This document shows positions 42,706 to 58,846 of a DNA stretch of 64,000 nucleotides, in pieces (the first letter of the stretch is position 1; each line of letters opens with the position of its first letter). Position numbers and translations under genes: made by a program. The DNA comes from Dimorphilus gyrociliatus (Eukaryota; Animalia; Annelida), in NCBI GenBank assembly GCA_904063045.1, contig CAJFCJ010000003.1, positions 1,674,001 to 1,738,000 on the forward strand, in the 5' to 3' direction. The notes under the pieces are model-generated. The model had not been told where the DNA came from and made no database searches. It worked only from the letters and a program-made list of their open reading frames with translations.

Positions 42706-45700
42706 TTAATTCACTCTAGATTGTTTTTTCATACAAACGATGCATCGAGAAATATAGGCTTTTTGTCCTCCGGACTTTAGAGTTAAAGTGCTTTGTTCAC
42801 CAGTTTGATAGTTCTTAACTTTATCTGACGCAACTAACCAGAAACTATATTTTCCAGCATGGAAATTACACGAACCACCTCCTCCCGTACACTCAATGAA
42901 TGGCATATTATTAAAATGCTGTAAGCAAGAACCAGGACTGGAGAGACTCTGACCACCTCCTTGTGCTCCAGCTCCAGTATGAAGAGCGAAACTGTAGCCT
43001 GACCATAATTCTTTCCAATGCATTGTATCTGGACAGGAGGGTAATTTAGAGGATTGGCTATGAAGAGCAATAACGTTGCCAGGAGCTTCACAAACTTTAC
43101 ATCTGGAAATGTATGGTTTAATATTGTCTCCTTCAGGAGGCATCATAGGTCTTTCCTTAGTTGTGGCTAACCAATAGGATTTGTCATTGGAGGCGGCGTA
43201 AGTACATACGTCAAACTGACAGCGCAATACTGGCATGACAGAAAAGCGCTTGACACAGCTTCCCGCCCAACCTAAATCTTGATGTTGAGCCCTAGAATTT
43301 CCAAGAATATGAACAAGAGAATAACCGGACCATAATGTTTGATGGCCAGGTTCCACGCATTCGGGTACTTCTTCTATCTGACTATGTATTGTATAAGTGA
43401 ACCCAGTAGGAAAAGTTAGTTTCTGCTTTACACTTCCATTCTGGCCTTTATTTCCTTTAGGACCTGGATAACCTCTTTCTCCTTTTTGACCAGGTATACC
43501 ATCTAGACCAGGTGCGCCCCGCTCTCCAACCGAACCTTTCTCTCCAGCTCTTCCTAGTATACCTTTTGGTCCTCTTTGACCTTCAAATATAAAAATAAAA
43601 GACTACATGCACAAATTTTTGAACTAAAAAACCTGGTTCTCCTTGCAATCCATCTTGACCGCTCTCTCCATCATAACCTCTTGGTCCTGGTAAACCATTT
43701 TCCCCTTTTTCACCTTTTTGGCCTGGAAGCCCGTATCCAGGCTTCCCAGGTTGTCCAGGATCGCCTCTATCACCTCTGGGACCCTCAGCTCCATCTTCAC
43801 CAGGTCTACCACTGTCACCAGTAGGACCTCTTGGACCTTTAGGCCCAGTAATGCCTGTTCCTTTTTCCCCCTTGTTTCCTTTTCAAATAGAAATATTAAT
43901 CAGCCTATACAGAAGAAAATGAAAAATGAAATAACCTTTTCGCCCTGGTAGGCCATTAAGACCTGGATTTCCAGTCTCACCAGTTAATCCTCTTTCACCT
44001 TTCGGTCCTCTTTCACCATCTGTGCCTCTTGATCCTTTTGCGCCTTTTTGACCTGGATTACCATTCAAACCGTTAGCACCAGGATCACCTGGAGGACCTG
44101 GAGGTAGAAAGCCTGAGCAGTCAATATCTGATCCTTTGGGGCCGGTGTTTCCTTTGTCTCCCTTTTGTCCTACAAATACTTCAAGTTATGCATAATAATA
44201 CTAAATGTAATCTAGAAAGTTAACCTGCAGCTCCTTCTAATCCTGGTAACCCAGGAATACCTTGATTCCCTTTTGGTCCAGGCTTGCCAGGGACTGAGGT
44301 TGAAATTCCGGGATTTCCTTTTGCTCCAGGATCACCCCTATCACCCTTTTTCCCATCGTAGCCTCTCGGACCTGTAGCTCCTTTTTGACCAGCGATTCCG
44401 GCTTCGCCCCTCTCACCTTTAGCACCAGGAATACCATCAGTTCCCGCAGTTCCGGGATCTCCTTTAGCGCCCGGTCCACTCGACCTTCCTGGTTCACCTT
44501 TATCACCTCTTAAGCCTTGAACACCATTTAAGCCCGATTTTCCATCGAGGCCGTCATTTCCTCGCTCTCCCTTTGGTCCTTTAAGACCAGGCTCTCCAGG
44601 AACACCAGAAGCACCAGGTTCTCCAGGACGGCCAAAACCAGGAGCTCCTTTAGAACCCTTTTCACCCACCTTTCCAGGTTTACCAGGATTTCCTTTTTGA
44701 CCAGGAAGTCCAGAAAGTCCTACTGATCCACGGTATCCCGGTGGTCCTACTTCTCCCTAAAAAGAAATTTCATATATCTGCATATTTAGTTAATAACGTC
44801 TGAAAAATTACCTTTTTCCCTACTGAACCTTCAGGACCTCTGTCTCCCTTTTGTCCTCTGATACCATTGAAACCTTGACTACCTTTGGCACCTTTGGAGC
44901 CGGTTAACCCTGGATTTCCCTTTTCGCCTTTAGAACATACTCCCGAAGTACCCTTTTCTCCCTTCTGCCCCTCAATTCCGTCAAAACCCCGCTCTCCTTT
45001 AGGACCTGTTGAACCTGGATTTCCTTTGTCTCCTCTTGATCCTTTTGGTCCTTTAAGACTGGAACCACTCCTCTCACCTTTTGGTCCTCTGTCACCCTTC
45101 TGTCCAGGAATACCAATTAATCCTGCAAAAGTCCAAAATCAGTCACAGTAACTGCAGTTATTATGATTTAAAAACATATTATCTAATACAGTCACGATAA
45201 TAAGTAATTAGTACAAAGAAAAAAAGTTTTATAAGGTGATTATTTGGTGTTATATAATTTAATTTGCCTAATCATCATATTAAATCTGTACGTCAAGTCT
45301 TGGTTGAAACACTGTAAAAGTTAGTTAATTTGCTTCCTTTTTAGAGTTGGATTTTAGAAGGGCCTATTTTTCAACTCTTTCATTTCAACTTCTATTTGCA
45401 TAAAACCTTTTTAACATCAGACAATGATATCTGAATAGGAACAGTACAGTTTGGTAAAATTTCTTGTCCTGTCCAGTTTGGTTTAAATCTTCATTTTTTT
45501 GTAATCTACAATTTCATTTTCCTTGTTATTGTTTGTGATCTGGGAGATAATAACTCTTAATTGTAACGTCATAGCAACTGTGTTAAAATTACTTAATAGC
45601 TTGTGAAATAATCTATACCATAAACATATTTTGATCGTCAAAGAATTCACATGTTTAAAACTTTTTATCCCTTGTTATAATTAGTTATTATCGTGACTGT

Positions 45701-48700
45701 ATTATATATTTTAGATAAATGGTATCTCACAAAAAATATAGTTGTGGAAGTATCATGTTTTTAATAAAATTCGCAAACCTTGCTTTCCTGGTAGACCCCT
45801 ATCGCCTTTTGGGCCTTCTGGTCCGTCTCTACCACTTTCACCAGGATGACCTCTGCTTCCAGGAGTTCCTGGATTCCCCATTCGACCAGGAGGTCCCATA
45901 GAGCCTTTTTCTCCAGATTTTCCGTCTTGTCCTGGGTAACCAGCTTCACCTTTTTCTCCTGGTTCTCCCCTTACAGTCTCTCCTGGTTGTCCCTGTGGTC
46001 CTCTGTCACCTTTTCTACCAGGCATTCCCGGTACACCAACTGAACCTGGTAACCCGTCGCTACCTGTTGCACCTCGATCTCCAGGCTCTCCCTTTCGACC
46101 ATCATATCCCAATTCACCTCTCTCCCCCTTCATTCCTTTCTGTCCATATCCAGGGGACCCCTTCTGTCCCGGTAATCCAGGAGGACCAGAACTTCCATCT
46201 GCACCATTCACGCCATCTTTTCCTCTTTCACCAGGAACACCTTTATCTCCTGAAGTACAAAAAATTTAGTATGTAATGTGTTAAATTGAACTAAAAAAAT
46301 TTGTGGTAATACCTTTTCTGCCAGGAAGACCCGTGAGTCCTAACTTCCCAGGATACCCGATCTCTCCTTTATCTCCTTTAATTCCATTTGTGAAACTACC
46401 AGGTTCTCCTGTTAAAAGAAATTTAAATAACAAAAGAACTATATATATAAAGAAATTCAAATAATGGTTATTATACCTTTAAAACCTTGAGGACCTGAAT
46501 CACCCTTTTGTCCTGGTATCCCATTTTCACCCGGATTGCCATCTAGCCCTCTAGATCCGGGGGATCCCATGTTTCCCTTATCACCCTTCTGGCCAGACAA
46601 TCCAGGTAAACCTGGGGATCCTCTAGGACCGACTCTGCCGTCTTTTCCTGTAGAGCCTTTTACACCAGGCTGACCGTCCCTCCCTCGAAGTCCATTCACA
46701 CCAGGTTCTCCTTTTTCTCCTTTTTGAGTCAGACTACCACCCGCTGCCGTGCAATTAGCAGTATTTCCCTTTGGACCGTCTATTCCTCTAGGCCCACGAT
46801 CTCCTTTTAAACCTCTTCGTCCAGGTTGTCCATCTGAACCACGATCACCCGGTTCTCCTTTATTCCCTGGGAGGCCGTTTTGTCCCCTGTTTCCCTTTTC
46901 GCCAGATTCACCTCGATTTCCTTTGTCACCTCCTCTTCCAGGAATTCCTGCTTTTCCAGGAAGACCTCTTGATCCATCAACACCGGGCGACCCGGGTAAA
47001 CCTCTAGGTCCTTGTTCACCTTTAATGTCTATCTGATTAATATCTATAGTTTCTCCTTTTTCACCCTTAGGTCCATTATATCCTCTTGGTCCTTCTGCAC
47101 CCTGAAAAATATAAAAAATGGCCAATTGTTGAGGACTTTTTGGCACCTACCATCTCTCCAGTTAGCCCTCTCCGTCCACTTTCTCCTTTTTGACCAGGCA
47201 AACCAGGGGCTCCATTTACTCCAGATTCACCAGGATTACCGTCTCTCCCATCTTCACCCGGAGCTCCGGGGTAGCCTCTTTCACCTTTCGGTCCGTTGCA
47301 AGCTTGACACTCCCCTCCTTTAACACCTTTTTCTCCATGATCACCTTTCCTGCCATTATATCCAGGATTTCCAGATTTTCCTGTATCACCCTTTATTCCA
47401 GGGTCACCTTTTGATCCTGGTATACCTTCAAGAGTATCACCTGGCAATCCTATTTCGCCTTTATCTCCCTTATATCCAGTGTCTCCTCTCTCTCCTTTTT
47501 GTCCGGTATCACCTATGGGACCAACACCCCCTATTCCAGGATCTCCTTTTATTCCTTCACGCCCTTTTTCACCCTTTTGCCCAGCAAGGCCTTCAATACC
47601 CCTTGGCCCTTTTCTTCCTGCAGCTCCTGGTTGACCGGGTGGTCCAACTGGACCCGGTTCTCCTTGATAGCCCTTCTCACCTCTCTCACCTCCTTGACCA
47701 GGAAGACCCGGAGGCCCATCTGAACCTTTTAACCCTTCACTTCCCCTAACACCTCTGAGCCCTGGAGGTCCTTCTTCACCCTTTTCGCCTTTTTGAACAG
47801 GCGGACAGTTTCCTCCTCCCTTACCAAAACAATCTCGACCTCTTGGCCCTGGTCTCCCCTTCACGCCTTTACTTCCAGAAGGTCCTATCGGACCCAAATC
47901 ACCCTTTTCTCCCCTTTCACCATCATATCCTCTGTCTCCTTTCGGACCACTAGGACCGGTATCACCAGGATGACCCTTTAAAATAATATATTAATATTCA
48001 TCATAATCTTAAACCGTTCATGCATACAAACCCTAAGACCTTGTTGTCCAGGTAAACCTTTTTCACCTTTTTCTCCTGGGTAACCAGCAGGACCCTACAT
48101 AATCAACAAAAGCTACTGAGAGAAAATAAAGTAAGAAAATCGCAACTTACTAGATCTCCTCGTTCACCTTGATCTCCAGGTCGACCAGGTTCACCTTTGT
48201 AACCACGCAAACCAGGCTCTCCTTTGTTCCCCTTATCCTTATATTGAGTGCAGTTGGTGCCAAATTCCGGCATCTGTTAATTTGTAATTTTGACATATAA
48301 CTTAATTATATGTGATTGTAACGCATACCTCACAATCACACTCTCCTTTCTCTCCTTTTTCTCCTTTATTTCCACTTCGGCCTCTTTCGCCATTATGAGA
48401 CAGTCCAGGAACCCCAGGTTCACCTTTTTCGCCTACTGAACCAGTATAACCTCTATCGCCTTTTTCACCATCAACACCAAGGCGACCTGGTACACCTTTT
48501 TGACCTTTAACACCCTGCAGAGCATTTATTTAGAACAAGAAACTATCTAATAATTCATAACTTACAGGATAACCTCTAGGTCCTTTAGCACCGTCATCTC
48601 CCTTGATACATTGCCCTTTGCAATCACCTCTTCCGGGCTCTCCTTTTATCCCCTTGATACCTATTTAATTTCTAGGAAGTTTTAGAGTAATAAAAAGTAT

Positions 48701-50034
48701 TGAAAAGGTTACCTGGATTTCCGTTATATCCTGGGGCACCATCTAGGCCTTGTACTCCTTTTGTTCCTTTTTCTCCTGGGGCTCCATCACAACCGTCTTT
48801 TCCAGGTGGTCCAGGATATCCAGGATTGCCATCTACTCCCTTTAAATAAAATATAATTACTGATGTAAAAAAATTTAGCATGAACTTACCGATAAGCCAG
48901 TTCGGCCTGGATGTCCTGGATACCCAGGAGGACCCTTAATAAAAATATAATATATAAGTAACACTATAGTACAATTAAGTTGTTCTTTAGAGGCTTCTTA
49001 CTCTGTCTCCTTTAAATCCTCTCAATCCGGGCATTCCATTTTCCCCTTGAAATCCAAGGTCTCCTGTTGGGCCCTCAACGCCCTTATAGCCCTTTGGGCC
49101 AGGCTCACCTTTTTGTCCCGCTTGTCCAGGACGACCCTGTTGAATTAATTCAAAAAATTGTAGAGTATAACAAGTATTCTAGCGAAACAATCATAAACTG
49201 CCTAGACTTAAGTCTTACGCAAAGTAAGTGAGAAAGTGCAAAACAGATTATTTAAATCAGTAAGTTTTAAAAGATCTAACTTAGGTTTACATAGGAAAAT
49301 ATAAAATTTCTTGTCCAGATACATTGCACGTGATCAGAATATAATATACTATTGGGTGTATATATCGTGTAATCTTAAGCATTTGTTATTCTCTAATTTA
49401 AAACATTAGGTTGATCTGCATAAGACAAAAACTAATAAAAACCAGATATCTTGTCTGTTAAGGGAAGTTTTATAATTAATACAAGACGTATAATTAGACC
49501 AAGCACAGATGAGGAAACAAAAAAGATAACTCCATAATAAACTTTGTACATTTGTACACTTGCCCAAACATTTCATGAGAGGGATTCAGTACTGACCAAG
49601 CTTGGTTATTTAAAACCAAAATATGTCCAACTGTACAATGTAATTGGCTAGATGATACGTACTCAGAAGTTCAATGACCGAAAACTAGTAAGCTATACAT
49701 CAAGTTATCTTAAATACTGCGAACGTTTAGGAGTCTAAAAAAACTGCCAAAGAGGATAAATCAGAGGAATGTTTAAAATCAGTTACGTAAGGCTGCTATA
49801 GGGGCAAAAATGCAACCACACCTTGAAATGATTCATACATAAAAACAAAACCTCAGGGTATAGGCGTATTACTATAAAAACTCCCTTATCAAATACTATT
49901 CTTGTAATGGGGGAAAAAGAGTGTGATTGCAAGTGCAAATTTCAAAAAAATTTTCGAGAAATCTAAGCTTGTTTCTACAAATAAATAAGAGTGACTGAGA
50001 TAAGAATATTGGTCTCTATTCGTCAATACAATTT

Positions 50035-50101
<67 letters not shown>

Positions 50102-51262
50102 CAAGTCAAACTGTCAACTTGACGATTGTTTAAACAAGACTTGAGAAAAGACACTAGCCGGTTAAAATCTCGGACAAGGACACATTTTCTCAAAAATTTA
50201 ATTCAAGTAGAGGGAATATTACCCTTTAGAAAAGTTTTTGTTAGGGTCGCGTGTCGTTTGTTTTTTTAATACGAACAGGAAAATCAACACTGTTCAGTTG
50301 TTGTTTGTAAATGGGTTTGCTCTGCGTATAGCGTGAAACGTAAACAAACTGGTCCCTTTAAACTAATATACAACCATTTCCTTTCCATAAGAATTTACTT
50401 AATTGGGATATTTAAAGAGGAAATATTGGAACGGTTTTTAATAACTTCCTTTGACAGGCATATAAGAAAGTTATAGTCACCCTTGATCCTTTTCGTCCGA
50501 CGCATTTGCAGGTGCTGTTGAATCTTGTGCAGTCTCCACAAGGTTTTATTGAATCGATACTGTCCGCCTGCATAAGAAATAATAGATAAAAGAGAATACG
50601 GAAAAAACTCTATCAAAACTTTTATGTTTGTAAGTTATACCAAAATTTAAAACATTCGTTTCAAATAAAAAAAATACCCCGTTTCATATCTGATCTATAG
50701 GTTTTTAAAACAGTGCTCTACAGTTGCAAACCATGCCGTAAAACTAAAAAGCCCAGCTATAAAATCTACCTACTAACGACCTGTATAGTAATAAAGGGGG
50801 AATAGCATCAAAGGCGAATTTACCTCCCTACCCCTTTCTACTTTGCTTAGAACAGACGATGAGTTATTTACCGTCTGCTTCGTTGATTTTATCACAAAGT
50901 AAACATTTTCACACAGCTATACCCTTACTAGTAAACTAAGTCGGAGTGTGTTTTTTAAAAACAAAGCAAGTTGCTTGATTAATTCGAAAAAAAAAACCCA
51001 GTCTGAATTCGCACGCCTGTCAGACATGTGCGCAACCCCACCCAAAAAAGCCTATAAAAAATTCTAGTCCTAACAGTACATGAAAAATGAGTTTGTAATG
51101 GGGTTATTGAACTTACCTGCGACGGTCGCAAGAATATGACTAGAATATATAGAAGAGTGCTGCCCCTTTTTCGAGAGAAAAAAACGAAATTTTTTTTGTA
51201 TAAAAATTCAAAAAATGTTCAATAACTAACCAGCACAGCAAATCAGCAGAATAAAAACGCAT
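42706..51262 (-). CDS. COL4A2: Collagen type IV alpha2-like chain
   Basis: Signal exons [10 protein letters not shown]|[17 protein letters not shown] (51262), then the 7S start [14 protein letters not shown] and many Gly-X-Y exons with interruptions. The NC1 has 12 Cys and alpha2-type signatures [39 protein letters not shown] and KYSFWL. Internal exon boundaries were not all enumerated. Confidence 0.92.
50039..50101. repeat. (AT)n microsatellite
   Basis: About 30 units with one interruption, in a collagen alpha2-like intron. Confidence 0.95.
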
Positions 51263-51697
51263 GTCTACTTCTCCGTCAAGTAAGAGAGAAAAATTTCATT
51301 ATACAAATTCCTAAATATACAGTTTGTAGAAAAGACCGGTGAGAATTTGACTAGATATGAAGAAAATCAATGATTCTTCCACGATAAACTTCTTCGATGT
51401 TACAAACTTGGTTTGATGCAGATGAAGAGTACAGAAGGAATCAAATCGTTTGGTCTGTTTGTAAATTTGCGCGCCAAATAGTTCGTTTAATACTAAACTC
51501 TCCATTATGTTTTTCTTTATTCACAATAAACCTAAAATGAATGTTTTACAATATTCAAGCTTTAATAACTCTTTAATTAAATTTTATAAGTAATGAAAGA
51601 ATGATAAAAGTTTGTTAAAAATAGTTCCGGCTTGGTTTGATGGCTACGCGCACAGAAGTTGAGAGGCATAGACTAGAGAGAGAGCGGCGATGTGGAT
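51263..51697. promoter_or_regulatory. Shared bidirectional promoter region of the head-to-head collagen IV pair
   Basis: Start codons 51262(-) and 51698(+) are 435 bp apart. Head-to-head COL4 pairs with a shared promoter are established in vertebrates and Drosophila. A GA-rich tract lies at about 51661-51684. Confidence 0.75.
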
Positions 51698-54600
51698 ATG
51701 AAGAATTTGTACATATTTTTTCCAATTCTCTTCTATTACGTTGAATCAAAGGTTAGTTTTAAAAATTTTTCTAGATTGATAAAAATAAATTATATCTTCT
51801 AGATATTTATGATGTCATTTTTGAAATTTCTCTTAAAATTGAATCATTCAGTTTTAACTCAAAAGCAGATGGGCTCATTAATATTCATAAACTTCTATTA
51901 AATATTCATTATCCTAGTATAATTTACGGCAAACCAACGTTCAGCGCGTAAACGTTTTAAGTGTATAGTCTAGAACAGACACAAGGCAGATTTTCGTAAT
52001 TTTTCACGCTAAGCTTTTACAGAAAGTCAGATCGCAAGAACGAAGTTTATAAATGTGTTTTCCGTATTTCAAAAAGCTATAAATAATCTTAATAAATAAG
52101 GATTATTGGTTGTTGGACATAATTGCAAACTATATCTGTATTGAATCATTGCCGTTCTGTATCAGCAAGTCTATTTCCCACAAAATACACCTATAATATT
52201 AAGTTTGCATATTTATCTTAAATAGATCATATATAAAATTTTGTTTTAAGAACTAAGTTATATTTTAAGAAGGTGGCGCTTTCTTTTCAGAACTATCTTT
52301 GAATGTCTAATACTCTGTTAACAGGCAACTCCAACTACTGATCCCAAAATAGAACAAGCATATATTTATGGATATACTTGTGATGGATGTATAAATACGA
52401 AAAGATGCGTTTGCAGGGGATTAGACGGGCCACCGGTATAATTCTAAAAAAATATATGTTACTTTAATTATCTTTCTCTAATTATAACAAGGGCGAACCT
52501 GGGCCGCTCGGTGGAAAAGGGCTTCCGGGAGATGTTGGGAGTATTGGACCACCTGGGGAGAAGGGTTCAAGGGGTCCAATTGGGCACCGTGGTTATCCTG
52601 GCTCCAGGGGACTGAAGGGCGAAAAGGTGTTAAATGTCTTTTAACATTTACAAACAATTATGATCTCACATGTTTCAGGGCGATGTAGGATTTGTAGGAT
52701 TTGATGGTCCACCTGGAGGAAGCGTAAGTATAGTTTTTGCATTACATCAAATTACGAAAATATATAAATTTATATCTAAAAAAACAGGGTTCGCGTGGGG
52801 CTGATGGGGAACCAGGACCTCCAGGAGAACCTGGATGCAATGGAACTAAGGTAGATTAACTCTCTATAGCACAATATATGTAGATACATCAGATGTCGCC
52901 ACTAATCATATTTAAAATAAAAGCACCTTTTTTCCTTAGGGAGAACTGGGAATGACAGGTTCTCCTGGAGAACCCGGTCGAACAGGCAGACGAGGTATAG
53001 ATGGCGTTATGGGCAGAAAAGGAGAGCCTGGAGAATCCCATGGAGAAAATGGACAACCTTTGAAAAAAGGACCAAAAGGTAACTCCGGGATTAGAGGTGA
53101 TTTTGGCAGTTTTGGCCCCAGAGGTGATGAGGGAGATATTGGGCCTCAGGGTGAAAAAGGAATGAGAGGAGATGATGGTTTAAAGGGCTTTAAAGGACCT
53201 AAAGGGTCGAAAGGAGCAGACTTTGCTATTGACCCCAAAAAATTAGACGGTGAAAAAGGGCAGAAAGGTAGAAAAGGTGAAAAAGGTGAAACAATAACTC
53301 CTGCTTTCGTTGGTGATCCTGGAAAAACTGATGGAGATCCTGGAGAACCCGGTTCAACAGGAGACTTTGGAGCTAAAGGTGAAAAAGGAGAGAAAGGTTT
53401 GAAAGGCAAAATCTCTTTAATAGAGGGCGAAAAAGGAAGAAATGGTGAAACAGGATATAAAGGCCGACCGGTCAGTTTAAAGTAATCCATTAATAATAAA
53501 AATTTATAGATTTACTTTTATGTAGGGATTAAAAGGATTTATGGGCGACCTAGGTAGAAAAGGCTATCAAGGCGATTCTGGAATACGTGGTATTAAAGGT
53601 TATTTAGGGGATGCAGGACCAAAGGTTTGATTATCATTCACGGTTAGCAAAAATTCAACTTTGGTTTAACTCCAGGGATACCAAGGATTAGAAGGAGACA
53701 TTGGTGAAATGGGTGAACCTGGGAGATACTTAAGTATACCTACTAAGGAATATGGAGAAAAGGGAGAACCGGGAATTTCTGGGATTAGAGGACCAAAGGG
53801 TTATCATGGTATCAAAGTATGTGCTCTTTTAGTAGCTCTTAAATTAAGTTTCCAACTAGTGAGTTTTAGGGCAAAGAAGGCAGCCTTGGTAAGAAAGGCA
53901 CTAGAGGAGAAGACGGTAGAGAGGGTGATATTGGTGATAGAGGAAATCCAGGTCACCCAGGAATACAAGGTTATAATTACATTAAAAAAAAACTTCAAGC
54001 TCTAAAGAAATTTTTAACTTTCTACTACAAGGTTTACCTGGACAAGACGGAATTCGTGGAGAACCTGGCCAAATGGGTATTCCTGGGCAATCAGGAGAAG
54101 ATGGCGACAAGGGATTGAGGGGAGATTCAATTAGAACACGGAAAGGTATGAGGAACTTTTTATCTCGTTAGCTGAAATATTATATCTAAATTTTAAAAAG
54201 GTGAGAGAGGACGAAAAGGAGACAAAGGGTTTTTGGGATTTAAAGGAGTAAAAGGGATCATTGGCCAAAAAGGCTTTCCGGGAAAACCCACTAATCTTAC
54301 ACCTAGGAAGGGAGAAAAAGGTAGCAAGGGTCCAAGAGGAAACACAGGTCCCGATGGCCAAGACGGTTTACCTGGTCAGAAAGGCGACAAGGGTTTTAAA
54401 GGTGAAGACTGCCCTTTTTGTCCATCCAGAAGAGGGGATAGAGGAGATAGAGGGTCTCCAGGAAAATCTGGCGCTGCTGGAAGAAAAGGAAAACGGGGTA
54501 TCGATGGTTCTGACGGAGTTAAGGGAAGAAAGGGAATCCCAGGAGCAACCGGACAAAAAGGAGAGATGGTTAGTTCTTTTAATTAAGTATTTGAAATAAG

Positions 54601-56870
54601 GGATAATTTAATAATAAAAAATATAGGGAAAAACTGGTACAAGAGGATCTCTTGGCTACAAGGGACCAAAAGGAGAACCAGGAGATATAAATTTAGCAAA
54701 AGGCTTTTTAGGCGAAATAGGAGAGAAAGGTTGGCCTGGACTTCCTGGCTTGAAAGGTCCAAGAGGAGAACAAGGTCCAATAGGTCCAACTGGTCGGAAA
54801 GGTATACCAGGTGATACAGGCTACAAAGGGGACCACGGTGATCCAGGGCTTGATGGACTTCAAGGCCAAAAAGGTCGAAGAGGAAATTCTGGATATGCTG
54901 GAACAGAGGGTGAAAAAGGCTATGTTGGAGATCCAGGCCAACAGGGTCCTAAGGGTCCTTTAGGAGATATAATCTATGATCCAAATTCGTCCAAAAGGTT
55001 GAAAACAGGCGATCCAGGAGTGCCAGGACAGCCAGGTATAGATTTATTTTAGAGGTATCATACCCATATTAGTGAATTTCAGGAGGTATGGGTTTACCTG
55101 GAAAACCTGGAGAAGAGGGTGAAGATGGAAACCCTGGTGAAGCTGGACCTAAAGGTTATGTAGGAAATACTGGGTTATCTGGATTTCCTGGTGACAAGGG
55201 AGAAAGTGGTAGACAAGGTTTTGATGGTTCAAAAGGAAAAAGAGGAGGGGATGGTATTAAGGGTGAAAGAGGGAATATGGGACAAAAGGGAGTGAGAGTA
55301 AGTTATAATTAAAGTTATAAGTAAACTACGATTTCTTTGAGAAAATCGTTTGACAGTTTGCTAATATTTGTATCTTCGTCAGGGAGAATCAGCTGCAACA
55401 GCTAAAGGTTTAAAAGGAGAGAGAGGGGAACCTGGTCCAGATGGAAGACAGGGTCCAATGGGCGAAGATGGGGGGCAGGCCTCTAAGGGAGAACAGGGAA
55501 TAGATGGAAGAAAAGGAAGAAAAGGACAACCTGGACGTAGAGGTCAGACTGGAAAAAAAGGAGAAAATGGTTCAAATCTTCCTGGTCAAAAAGGTGCTAA
55601 TGGGGAAAGAGGACCGCAAGGGAAGCAAGGTATTAAGTATGAGTTTTGGCTTCATCACATTAAAAAAATTTTTAACACTATTAGGAGAGAAAGGAGAGGC
55701 TGGACTTGGGGGAAGAGATGGAATTGTGGGAAAAACTGGTAAACAAGGAATTTCAGGCAGAAAAGGAGCGACAGGAGAGGTTGGAGAGCCAGGAAAGAAG
55801 GGTATTGAAATATATAACAAAGGAGTAAAGGGTAGTTCAGGTGAGAGAGGTCGACCGGGAAGATCTGGAAAAAAAGGAGAAATTGGTGATATTGGTTATT
55901 CAGGAATACCAGGATTCTCAGGGTTAACGGGTCAAAAAGGCCGCAAAGGCTCACAAGGAAAAATTGGGAAGCCTGGTCCTATAGGTGATTCGGGGGTTGA
56001 TGGCGGTCGTGGTTCTGCTGGTCGAAAAGGTTATTTTGGCGAAAAAGGAGAACCAGGTGATTCTGCTCCTGGTACTAAAGGCTCCAACGGTATGAAGGGC
56101 GTAAAAGGTAGTTCAGGTTCAAAGGGACTTGCTGGAGACATTGGTAATCCTGGTAGGAAAGGATTTCCCGGAGAAAGTGCGATAAGCCAACCTGGTGAGA
56201 GGGGAGAAATAGGAGAAGTTGGTGAAAGCGGCCTATATGGAGATGTTGGAGCACTAGGACCACCCGGAGAAAAAGGAGAAGTTGGTGACAGAGGATTGGC
56301 TGGTACTGCTGGATCACCTGGAGAAAGAGGTCCTACTGGCCCTCAAGGATACCAAGGGCCATCGGGAGAGGATGGTGTTGAAGGTGCAAATGGTATTGAT
56401 GGACTGAAAGGATATGCTGGTGATCCAGTGAGTCTTATTAACTAAAATATCACATCAAACTAATTTTGCAACCATATAGGGAGAGGCTTTGGAAGCAGAA
56501 AAAGGTACTGATGGAACAAAAGGGATTGATGGCCTTTTGGGACAAAAGGGAGATAAAGGGGACAATGGGCTGAATGGTAAGACTGGTTTAAATGGATTAC
56601 CAGGCCAAAAAGGTCCAAAAGGTAATATGAATAGTCATAACTAAATGCCGGTTTAACTAACTGAAAAATTTCAGGTATGTCCGGCGAAAGTAGTAGAATT
56701 TCAGACAAGGGTATGAAAGGTGAAGCTGGACGTCCAGGAAGAAATGGTATAGTAGGAGCTAAAGGAGATATAGGATACCCAGGACCCGTTGGTGAATTTG
56801 GAGAAAAAGGGCAAGTGGGCAAAAAAGGTATCTAAGGGAAGAGAATCCATCATATTCAGTACACAATATA

Positions 56871-56916
<46 letters not shown>

Positions 56917-58846
56917 TATATATTATATACAGTATATATATAATATAATTGTTGTAGATTTCAGTATCAAATACGACTAAAAATGATTTTTTATTACCTA
57001 TTATTATTATCTTATACGAAAATTTAACGTATTTTACGTTCGTATGAATAAGTACCGTTGAAAGAATGACTTAAGACTAAGTTTGAATACTAAAACGTAG
57101 AGTCTACGCATAAAATAACGTAATGTTAGTATTAGACACATTGGCAACGTACCAATATCTAGACGTTATGACCATCGACTACATAATTATATGTAATAAA
57201 TATATATAATTATACTTTAGGTGCGAAAGGATTAAAAGGATATAATGGTGAGGTTGGTGATCCCGCCTCTTCAGAAAATAATGAGCCAGGAGAGCGAGGA
57301 GTGGTCGGGTCTCCAGGCTTACCAGGTAACAGGGGTGTTGAAGGAAGTAAAGGTGTTATAGGTGATCCAGGAGAAAAAGGTGCACCTGGGGTTAAACATA
57401 TACCGGATAGTTCACTCTTGAAAGGAAAGAAAGGAAACGATGGCCAAAATGGGTCCAAAGGAAAAAACGGACCAAATGGAGAAATGGGAGATGACGGTTA
57501 TCGAGGCCCAATTGGATTGCAAGGTGACAGAGGTAAGAAAAATCTTTCAATTAAATTAATGCAACACTTATAATTTCTAAAACGTAAAAAAAGATTCTAA
57601 AGTATACATTTGTTTATGGTATTTATAGGACGACGGGGTGAGGACGGGCGAAATGGTATAAATGGAAAAGATGGAAGTATAGGCTTAAAAGGTGACCCAG
57701 CCGACGCAGAGAGTGCACGTGGACAAACAGGTGATAAAGGTTTCAAGGGTATTGATGGTTACAAAGGTAAACCAGGACCAAAAGGATCAAAAGGATTTTC
57801 AGGTTCTAATTAGATAAAGTAGATCATGCTTCAGTTGACTAATAATTTCGTTTCCAGGACTAGATGGAAAGCCTGGTGTAGTCCTTCATTCAATACCAGG
57901 TCAAAAGGGCGAAAGAGGAAATCTTGGAAGAAGAGGTCCATCTGGAAAAATAGGCCGATTCGGCCTCAAAGGCATAGAAGGGAAAAGAGGTATTTACGGT
58001 CTTGATGGCGATCCTGGTCATAAAGGCAATAAAGGTGATCCTGGAAGTCAAGGAGTTACAGGTCTTGACGGTCCTGATGGAGAGAGAGGTGATAATGGCA
58101 GAGAGGGTAATTCAGGAGATGATGGGGATCCATATGTTATACCTAATAATTTGATATGGCCAGGATATTTATACGCAATTCACAATCAATCTACGTCAAT
58201 TCCTACTTGTCCTCCTGGTCTAAGAAAAGTATCTGATGGATATTCTTTAGTCTTTATGGAAGGAAATCGTTATGCCCATGGTCAAGATTTAGGAGAGTCG
58301 GGTAGCTGCTTGCCTGTGTTTGCCCCAATGCCCTTTCTATTTTGTGGTTTGGATAATACTTGTAATTATGCTCTTAGTAACGATTTTAGTTATTGGTTAT
58401 CAACTGGCGCACCAATGAGAAAAGATATGGAGGCTTTAAAGGGTAGGGAATTGGATATGCATGTTGGCAGATGTGCTATCTGTCAGTCTCAGACGCAGTT
58501 GATGGCAATCCACAGTTTCTCATCTGATCCTCCAAATTGTCCGGTTGATTGGTCAGCTAAATGGTATGGTTATAGTTTTGTACAAGTCAGTGGTCATGGT
58601 GGTCTTGGAGATAATCAAGCTCTACATTCTCCCGGTTCCTGTTTGCCCAAACCATATACAAATGTTATGATCCAATGCCATGGGAGAGGAACTTGCAATT
58701 ATTTTTCTAGTGATTTTAGTTACTGGTTGGCAGTTCCAGATGATACTAACGATTTTGCCAAGCCAAATAGTAAGACATACAAGGCTGGAGAATACCAACG
58801 GAAGATAAGTCGCTGTGTAGTGTGTGCGAAAAGGGTGTCATCTTGA
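51698..58846 (+). CDS. COL4A1: Collagen type IV alpha1-like chain
   Basis: Signal exon [18 protein letters not shown], then 7[14 protein letters not shown] and GCNGTK, and many Gly-X-Y exons. The NC1 has 12 Cys and alpha1-type signatures [34 protein letters not shown] and ISRCVVC. Stop TGA at 58846. Confidence 0.92.
56874..56912. repeat. (TA)n microsatellite inside a palindrome
   Basis: TA run flanked by atactg and cagtat, in a collagen alpha1-like intron. Confidence 0.9.

Follow-up and report, generated by a model that had tools for sequence, protein, structure and literature searches.

Serine replaces the chloride-switch arginine in both collagen IV genes of the annelid Dimorphilus gyrociliatus

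We analysed a stretch of 64,000 nucleotides from the genome of Dimorphilus gyrociliatus (GenBank assembly GCA_904063045.1, contig CAJFCJ010000003.1, positions 1,674,001 to 1,738,000 of the forward strand), called the window here. All coordinates below are those of the window. It holds two collagen IV genes, one alpha1-like on the + strand and one alpha2-like on the − strand. The genes are divergent and lie head-to-head, a pairing that is classic for collagen IV genes.

42706..49136, − strand: alpha2-like collagen IV gene, with collagenous exons and an NC1 exon (span given without the 5′ exons above 49136)
49137..52491, no strand: interval between the divergent genes, presumed from the gene layout to hold a shared promoter and 5′ exons
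52492..58846, + strand: alpha1-like collagen IV gene, with Gly-X-Y exons and an NC1 exon (span given without the 5′ signal-peptide and 7S exons)
58151..58846, + strand: alpha1-like NC1 domain, residues 1–231 plus the stop codon (58151–58843 coding), with two C4 modules

The alpha1-like gene has 426 Gly-X-Y triplets in 35 runs between 52492 and 58132 on the + strand. The alpha2-like gene has 444 triplets in 34 runs on the − strand, and its NC1 domain lies at 42706–43400 on the same strand. Positions 56860–56949, a TA-rich intron repeat, were masked in the scan for Gly-X-Y runs. The last exon of the alpha1-like gene is an open frame at 57839–58846 (stop codon at 58844–58846), of which the first ~100 codons are Gly-X-Y collagen repeats. 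This exon contains the interval 58361–58720, in which a first-pass annotation of this DNA had proposed a loss of chloride-switch residues.

The alpha1-like NC1 domain matched the Pfam C4 family (PF01413) twice (E = 9.7e-66) and has all 12 conserved cysteines, which form invariant columns in the alignment. Its matches to solved collagen IV NC1 chains from human, bovine and fly had E values of about 1e-78 to 1e-58. The bit scores against PDB chains were 265 for alpha5, 258 and 250 for two entries of alpha1, 247 for alpha3, and 200–209 for alpha2 and alpha4. The spacing between Cys176 and Cys182 is 5 residues, as in the alpha1 pattern. A six-frame Pfam search of the genome (77.9 Mb in 349 contigs) found four C4 modules, corresponding to two genes, both inside the window.

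In the published mechanism, the loop of residues 74–78 of NC1 binds chloride, and Arg76 is thereby freed from Asp78 and Glu40 (PMC4878091). The freed Arg76 bridges to Glu175 and Asn187 of the opposite trimer, and Arg179 contacts the ion (PMC4878091). With R76A in human alpha1 and alpha2, protomers and trimers formed and hexamers were blocked (PMC4878091). Arg76 and Asp78 were present in at least one chain in all species examined in that study (PMC4878091). Pedchenko 2019 defined the switch as Arg76, Asp/Glu78 and Glu175, the group-1 chloride residue as Arg/Lys179, and the group-2 chloride site as Phe/Tyr64, Asn66, Arg76 and Tyr/His189; in that study every species but a calcareous sponge had the switch in one chain or more (PMC6527180). 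The supplements of PMC6527180 and PMC5395295 hold no annelid or mollusc NC1 alignments, and our literature search found no paper that treats Dimorphilus and collagen IV together.

We determined the residue at each of these positions from HMMER alignments to solved structures, which were gap-free around the key sites. Residues are numbered as in human alpha1 NC1, with the first cysteine as Cys20. The codons of interest are the following.

58268..58270, + strand: Arg40 codon of the alpha1-like chain, a charge reversal of the conserved Glu40 at an interface position and a candidate compensating basic residue
58376..58378, + strand: Ser76 codon (AGT) of the alpha1-like chain, at the site of the chloride-switch Arg76 in a gap-free alignment
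58427..58429, + strand: Met93 codon of the alpha1-like chain, retained; sulfilimine cross-link donor
58673..58675, + strand: Gln175 codon (CAA) of the alpha1-like chain, at the site of Glu175, the salt-bridge partner of Arg76
58685..58687, + strand: Arg179 codon (AGA) of the alpha1-like chain, retained; its side chain contacts the group-1 chloride
58709..58711, + strand: Ser187 codon (AGT) of the alpha1-like chain, species-specific; Asn in the relative described below
58781..58783, + strand: Lys211 codon of the alpha1-like chain, retained; sulfilimine cross-link acceptor
43189..43191, − strand: Ser76 codon (TCC) of the alpha2-like chain
42877..42879, − strand: Gly codon of the alpha2-like chain at the site equivalent to Arg179

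Residues 74–78 of the alpha1-like chain are Ala-Leu-Ser-Asn-Asp, compared with Ala-Ser-Arg-Asn-Asp in human alpha1. Residues 174–179 are Ile-Gln-Cys-His-Gly-Arg, compared with Ile-Glu-Cys-His-Gly-Arg. Around residue 187, Y-F-S-S-D-F (with Ser186-Ser187-Asp188-Phe189) stands against Y-Y-A-N-A-Y of human alpha1. The first-pass annotation had read R76S, E175Q and N187S, together with a kept R179, from the four codons AGT, CAA, AGT and AGA listed above. The formal alignment agreed at all four positions; in particular, it placed Ser and not Arg at position 76. Besides Arg179, the alpha1-like chain keeps Ala74, Asn77 and Asp78. It has Arg40 and Phe79, and its residues at the group-2 positions 64, 66, 76 and 189 are F, G, S and F. 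Further changes in this chain are Arg56 to Val, Pro90 to Arg/Lys and Glu167 to Lys.

The alpha2-like chain does not supply the missing arginine. Its residues 74–78 are Ala-Ala-Ser76-Asn-Asp, and it has Ser40 and Lys79. It keeps Glu175 and has Gly at 187; its group-2 positions are R, Q, S and Y, with Phe64 changed to Arg. The residue at the group-1 position is Gly, compared with Arg in the alpha1-like chain. Asp78, Met93 and Lys211 are present in both chains. Thus Asp78 is the one component of the switch found in both chains, Arg76 is in neither, and Glu175 is missing from the alpha1-like chain; the alpha2-like chain keeps its Glu175, but no chain offers it an Arg76 partner. The full group-2 set is in neither chain. 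The check for another COL4 pair with an intact Arg76, which the first-pass annotation had proposed, found none in the genome searched, where the sole second collagen IV gene has Ser76. Because the alpha2-like partner has also lost Arg76, the canonical chloride switch would be unworkable in any chain. Judged by predicted residues, the published chloride switch and the group-2 chloride site are both absent from every chain in this genome.

How unusual these states are was assessed with 214 NC1 sequences outside this lineage, obtained from two word-indexed protein searches and representing vertebrates, molluscs, arthropods, nematodes, a hemichordate, a cnidarian and one annelid (Lamellibrachia alpha2). 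Arg76 was present in 212 of the 214, and Glu175 in each of the 213 that cover its position. Asp78 (211), Met93 (204) and Lys211 (208) were also conserved in this set, and Glu40 was found in 184 of the sequences. In a noisier library of 50% representatives, whose matches were fragmentary, unnamed and at most 46% identical and were used for residue frequencies, Arg76 was found in 94 of 153 rows and Glu175 in 96 of 106; the high-scoring rows with Met93 and Lys211 nearly all kept Arg76. Because Arg76 and Glu175 are so nearly invariant in the 214-sequence set, their replacement here is not due to chance. Lamellibrachia alpha2 keeps Arg76, Arg179 and Asn187, and therefore the losses arose within annelids. 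It is the only named annelid NC1 in the set, so that the ancestral annelid state of alpha1 rests on mollusc, hemichordate, arthropod, cnidarian and vertebrate outgroups.

Asn187 behaved differently. It was present in 172 of the 214 sequences. Cummings 2016 called this residue deuterostome-restricted (PMC4878091), whereas protostomes are among the 172 sequences that carry it here.

In a search of 5.8 billion protein clusters, the only close relatives were in the Logan assemblies of four runs from one series. They contain both chains: an alpha1-like chain (P0151) with an NC1 87% identical to that of D. gyrociliatus, and an alpha2-like chain (P0270) with an NC1 93% identical. The relative's alpha1-like chain has Gly66, Ser76, Gln175, Arg179 and Phe189 as here, and differs in having Asn187. 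Its alpha2-like chain likewise matches the one here, with Ser at 76 and Gly in place of Arg179. Arg40, Met93 and Lys211 are common to the two species, Met93 and Lys211 in both chains, and the two species also share all 12 cysteines in both chains. N187S carries little weight, because Asn187 is less conserved than the other positions and is Asn in the closest relative.

Between the two species, the NC1 of the alpha1-like chain had pN 0.064 and pS 0.741 (omega ~0.02, Nei-Gojobori), and that of the alpha2-like chain pN 0.066 and pS 0.720 (omega ~0.03, Nei-Gojobori); as synonymous sites are essentially saturated, these omegas are rough upper-level estimates of a very low ratio. Because the relative shares the variant, synonymous sites are saturated and dN/dS is only ~0.02–0.03, we infer that the variant is old and selectively maintained, with strong purifying selection on NC1. 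The codon for Ser76 is AGT in one species and AGC in the other in the alpha1-like gene, and TCC and TCA in the alpha2-like gene. As the codon families differ between the genes, the comparison suggests that Arg76 gave way to Ser independently in each gene and that selection then preserved both replacements. The expression record is thin and consists of partial 31-mer matches to the exon in three metatranscriptome runs (coral and marine).

Position 76 is not the only conserved site that changed. Of the 89 columns with 93% conservation or more elsewhere, 17 are altered in the alpha1-like chain and 8 in the alpha2-like chain, and five are altered in both: Leu34, Arg76, Met145, Glu166 and Arg169. 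At position 40, Glu has given way to Arg in the alpha1-like and to Ser in the alpha2-like chain. We also built a maximum-likelihood tree from 26 NC1 domains. There, the alpha2-like chains of the two species fell inside the alpha2 clade (support 99/97), and their stem is 1.27 changes per site long. Their alpha1-like chains fell outside it (97/93); the stem of this pair measures 1.72, so long that its exact place is unreliable. The median terminal branch in this tree was 0.23. The genome is described as keeping traits of slower-evolving genomes (PMC7854359), which makes it unlikely that the long stems stem from a fast clock across the whole genome.

These changes bear on an earlier interpretation, according to which the loss of Arg76 together with both of its partners looked like co-evolution toward chloride-independent assembly. 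The loss of Arg76 and Glu175 belongs to a broader and concerted set of substitutions that hit conserved charged residues in both chains, namely at Glu40, Glu166, Arg169 and Arg76; this fits co-evolution at the interface. The third element, N187S, does not share in this pattern, being species-specific with Asn187 kept in the relative. The interpretation thus has partial support: it gains from Arg76 and Glu175 and loses at residue 187, and the chloride-independent assembly it foresees is only predicted, as the new Arg40 at the interface could compensate.

On balance, we favour the view that D. gyrociliatus has a functional collagen IV whose NC1 domains would dock without the Arg76 chloride switch and would then be locked covalently. 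On this view, both NC1 domains were remade along the stem branch, after which purifying selection froze them. In this rebuilding, Arg76 became Ser in both chains, the alpha1-like chain also neutralised the cross-trimer partner (Glu175 to Gln), the alpha2-like chain lost Arg179, and the group-2 chloride ligands were lost from both. Two NC1 trimers would still dock into a hexamer, subsequently locked by sulfilimine bonds. The docking would be independent of the chloride-released Arg76–Glu175 bridge and would use rewired interface contacts instead, most likely with little or no dependence on chloride. Some chloride binding could persist in the alpha1-like chain, because the loop 74–78, which binds the ion through its main chain, survives there along with Asp78 and Arg179. 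Residue 76 is in any case an imperfect predictor of chloride behaviour, because chloride-independent nematodes and Drosophila alpha1 often keep Arg76.

A more specific form of this view can be offered as a tentative suggestion. The electrostatic latch of the trimer–trimer interface may have been rebuilt in one burst in both chains, through the changes (alpha1-like/alpha2-like) Glu40 to Arg/Ser, Arg76 to Ser/Ser, Glu166 to Pro/Gln and Arg169 to Tyr/Asn, together with Glu175 to Gln. The resulting docking mechanism would be new, for example centred on Arg40, distinct both from the Arg76 chloride switch and from the Mg2+ site of Diptera, and would operate in high-chloride sea water.

Arg40 also lends itself to a less likely but serious alternative, that the switch was relocated and chloride-dependent docking was kept. 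The positive charge of the alpha1-like chain would now sit at position 40 (Glu40 to Arg) instead of position 76. Arg40 would adjoin residue 76 and pair with Asp78 in the off state, with chloride held by the loop 74–78 and Arg179. In simulations, Arg76 has Glu40 as its partner within the monomer (PMC4878091), and positions 40 and 79 lie where the two trimers meet in the Drosophila hexamer (PMC10694668). Arg40 is present in both species at a position occupied by Glu in 184 other NC1 sequences, and Ala74, Asn77, Asp78 and Arg179 are all retained in the same chain. However, the acidic partner on the opposite trimer, Glu175, is neutralised in this very chain, and the alpha2-like chain has Ser40, Ser76 and no Arg179. 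The additional changes Arg56 to Val, Glu166 to Pro, Glu167 to Lys and Arg169 to Tyr/His point to a general rewiring rather than to the move of one charge.

The first-pass annotation had also left room for an animal with no NC1 hexamer. In such a case NC1 would serve only for chain selection and trimerisation, and the network would be held by 7S and lateral contacts. In favour of this, human R76A mutants give protomers and no hexamers (PMC4878091), and a need for trimerisation alone could explain why NC1 is so strongly constrained. The cross-linking residues tell against it: Met93 and Lys211 are meaningful only across the trimer–trimer interface, and they are kept in both chains and both species despite saturation. 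The genome also keeps a peroxidasin-like gene (G000:C2, ~268–273 kb), which combines a complete animal haem peroxidase domain (628 bits) with a signal-like start, LRR and several Ig domains; this is the layout of peroxidasin except for the vWC domain, which was not detected. Cross-linked hexamers were found in all 34 species surveyed by Boudko and colleagues 2023 (PMC10656227), and sulfilimine bonds stabilise hexamers without chloride (PMC13098435, 2026). Because Met93 and Lys211 are kept, the peroxidasin-like gene is present and NC1 is strongly constrained, a loss of the hexamer appears unlikely, and we give this branch of the earlier interpretation little credence. We give almost none to an assembly error, a pseudogene or a decaying paralog. 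Apart from the long branches, nothing suggests such an origin; both reading frames are intact with ~430 Gly-X-Y triplets each, the same states recur in the independent assemblies of the relative from four runs, omega is ~0.02–0.03, three RNA libraries contain part of the exon, and the genome has no further collagen IV gene that could step in.

Docking without the Arg76 switch would thus mean that basement-membrane collagen is probably joined in a different way in D. gyrociliatus, because both genes replaced Arg76 and yet stay under strong purifying selection. Arg76 and Glu175 have been treated as a defining, near-universal feature of collagen IV, with one calcareous sponge excepted (PMC4878091, PMC6527180). 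A bilaterian with a single alpha1/alpha2 pair and no Arg76 in any chain is in effect an R76-null experiment made by nature. Such an animal could reveal what has taken over from the switch in those chloride-independent hexamers of spiralians that have been seen biochemically and are unexplained by sequence. A low-chloride environment, the explanation offered for flies, cannot account for the loss here because the animal is marine. In the literature examined, chloride-independent hexamers are already established; what was not reported there is a gene pair without Arg76 in both chains, in a bilaterian.

The mammalian alpha1/alpha2 NC1 hexamer (PDB 1LI1, 1M3D and 6MPX), with its chloride switch and chloride ring of 12 ions, is the reference for these comparisons. 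The D. gyrociliatus chains share with it the two-C4 fold, the 12 cysteines, the Met93/Lys211 pair and the head-to-head gene pair, and the alpha1-like chain also shares Asp78 and Arg179. In contrast to the mammalian system, neither chain has Arg76; the alpha1-like chain also lacks Glu175, and the alpha2-like chain lacks Arg179. Asn66, Arg76 and Tyr189 are missing as group-2 ligands, and Glu40, Glu166 and Arg169 are changed in both chains.

The Cg25C/Viking hexamer of Drosophila (PDB 8TYS and 8TXN) is chloride-independent and driven by divalent cations. It provides a precedent for an adapted interface, as Viking lacks Arg76 (it has Asn76) and the group-2 sites are lost. It differs in that the Drosophila alpha1 chain keeps Arg76 and Glu175. 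According to Summers 2023, flies use Mg2+/Ca2+ through Asp40/Lys79 of alpha1 and Ser40/Asp79 of alpha2 (PMC10694668), whereas the corresponding residues here are Arg40/Phe79 and Ser40/Lys79. The dipteran Mg2+ mechanism, reported to be unique to Diptera (PMC10694668), was rejected for D. gyrociliatus on these ligand residues.

The third comparison is with the hexamer populations described by Boudko and colleagues 2023. Hexamers were chloride-independent in Ctenophora, Ecdysozoa (including Nematoda and Arthropoda) and Rotifera, and populations were mixed in annelids, molluscs and flatworms (Platyhelminthes) (PMC10656227). This is the class of phenotype to be expected here, and annelids are included in it. 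The annelids of that survey were clitellates (Lumbriculus and Hirudo), with no sequence basis given for their behaviour. D. gyrociliatus, in contrast, is a marine annelid with a single collagen IV gene pair, in which the switch would be absent organism-wide by sequence alone.

Ser76 was also found in the NC1 domain of the alpha2-like chain, where Gly occupies the position of Arg179 and is accompanied by Gly187, Arg64 and Gln66 (numbering of human alpha1 NC1). This domain retained Glu175 as well as Met93 and Lys211, the sulfilimine cross-link pair, and its residue pattern was conserved in a related species. In the alpha1-like chain, charge was altered at positions 40, 90-91 and 166-169, where other NC1s are conserved. 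The features are as follows (window coordinates, except for the last).

42706-43400, - strand: alpha2-like NC1 domain
58268-58270: Glu40 to Arg in the alpha1-like chain, at an otherwise conserved position
58418-58423: Pro90-x91 to Arg-Lys in the alpha1-like chain, directly before Met93
58646-58657: Glu166-Glu167-Phe168-Arg169 to Pro-Lys-Pro-Tyr in the alpha1-like chain
Contig C2 of the same assembly (G000), about 268000-273400, - strand: peroxidasin-like gene (retrieved as L006 and L016)

The relative carries both collagen IV genes (L005, a 70-kb contig of SRR23372228, and the retrieved sequences L012-L015), on different contigs and each cut off at one contig end. Its NC1 domains were 87-93% identical to those in the window, whereas identity was just 49-64% over the collagenous portion of the final exon. 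In its alpha1-like chain, the Glu40 change recurred and a basic pair was again present at 90-91, as Lys-Lys. Pro166 and Lys167 were common to the alpha1-like chains of both species, but positions 168-169 were Leu-His in the relative and Pro-Tyr in the window.

TA-rich simple repeats, translating as (Tyr-Ile)n, occur at 56860-56949, which is intronic sequence of the alpha1-like gene, and at about 50020-50100, between the two collagen IV genes.

The product of the peroxidasin-like gene begins with a signal-like N-terminus and contains LRR, several Ig I-set domains and a complete animal haem peroxidase domain. A scan of one C-terminal fragment revealed no vWC domain. Three more animal haem peroxidase loci were seen, on contigs C15, C6 and C20.

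A few further NC1s lack Arg76, namely the proteins P0366 (Nesidiocoris tenuis), P0345, P0035 and P0030. Residue 76 is Glu, Asn or Ser in these sequences, at least one of which is hemipteran.
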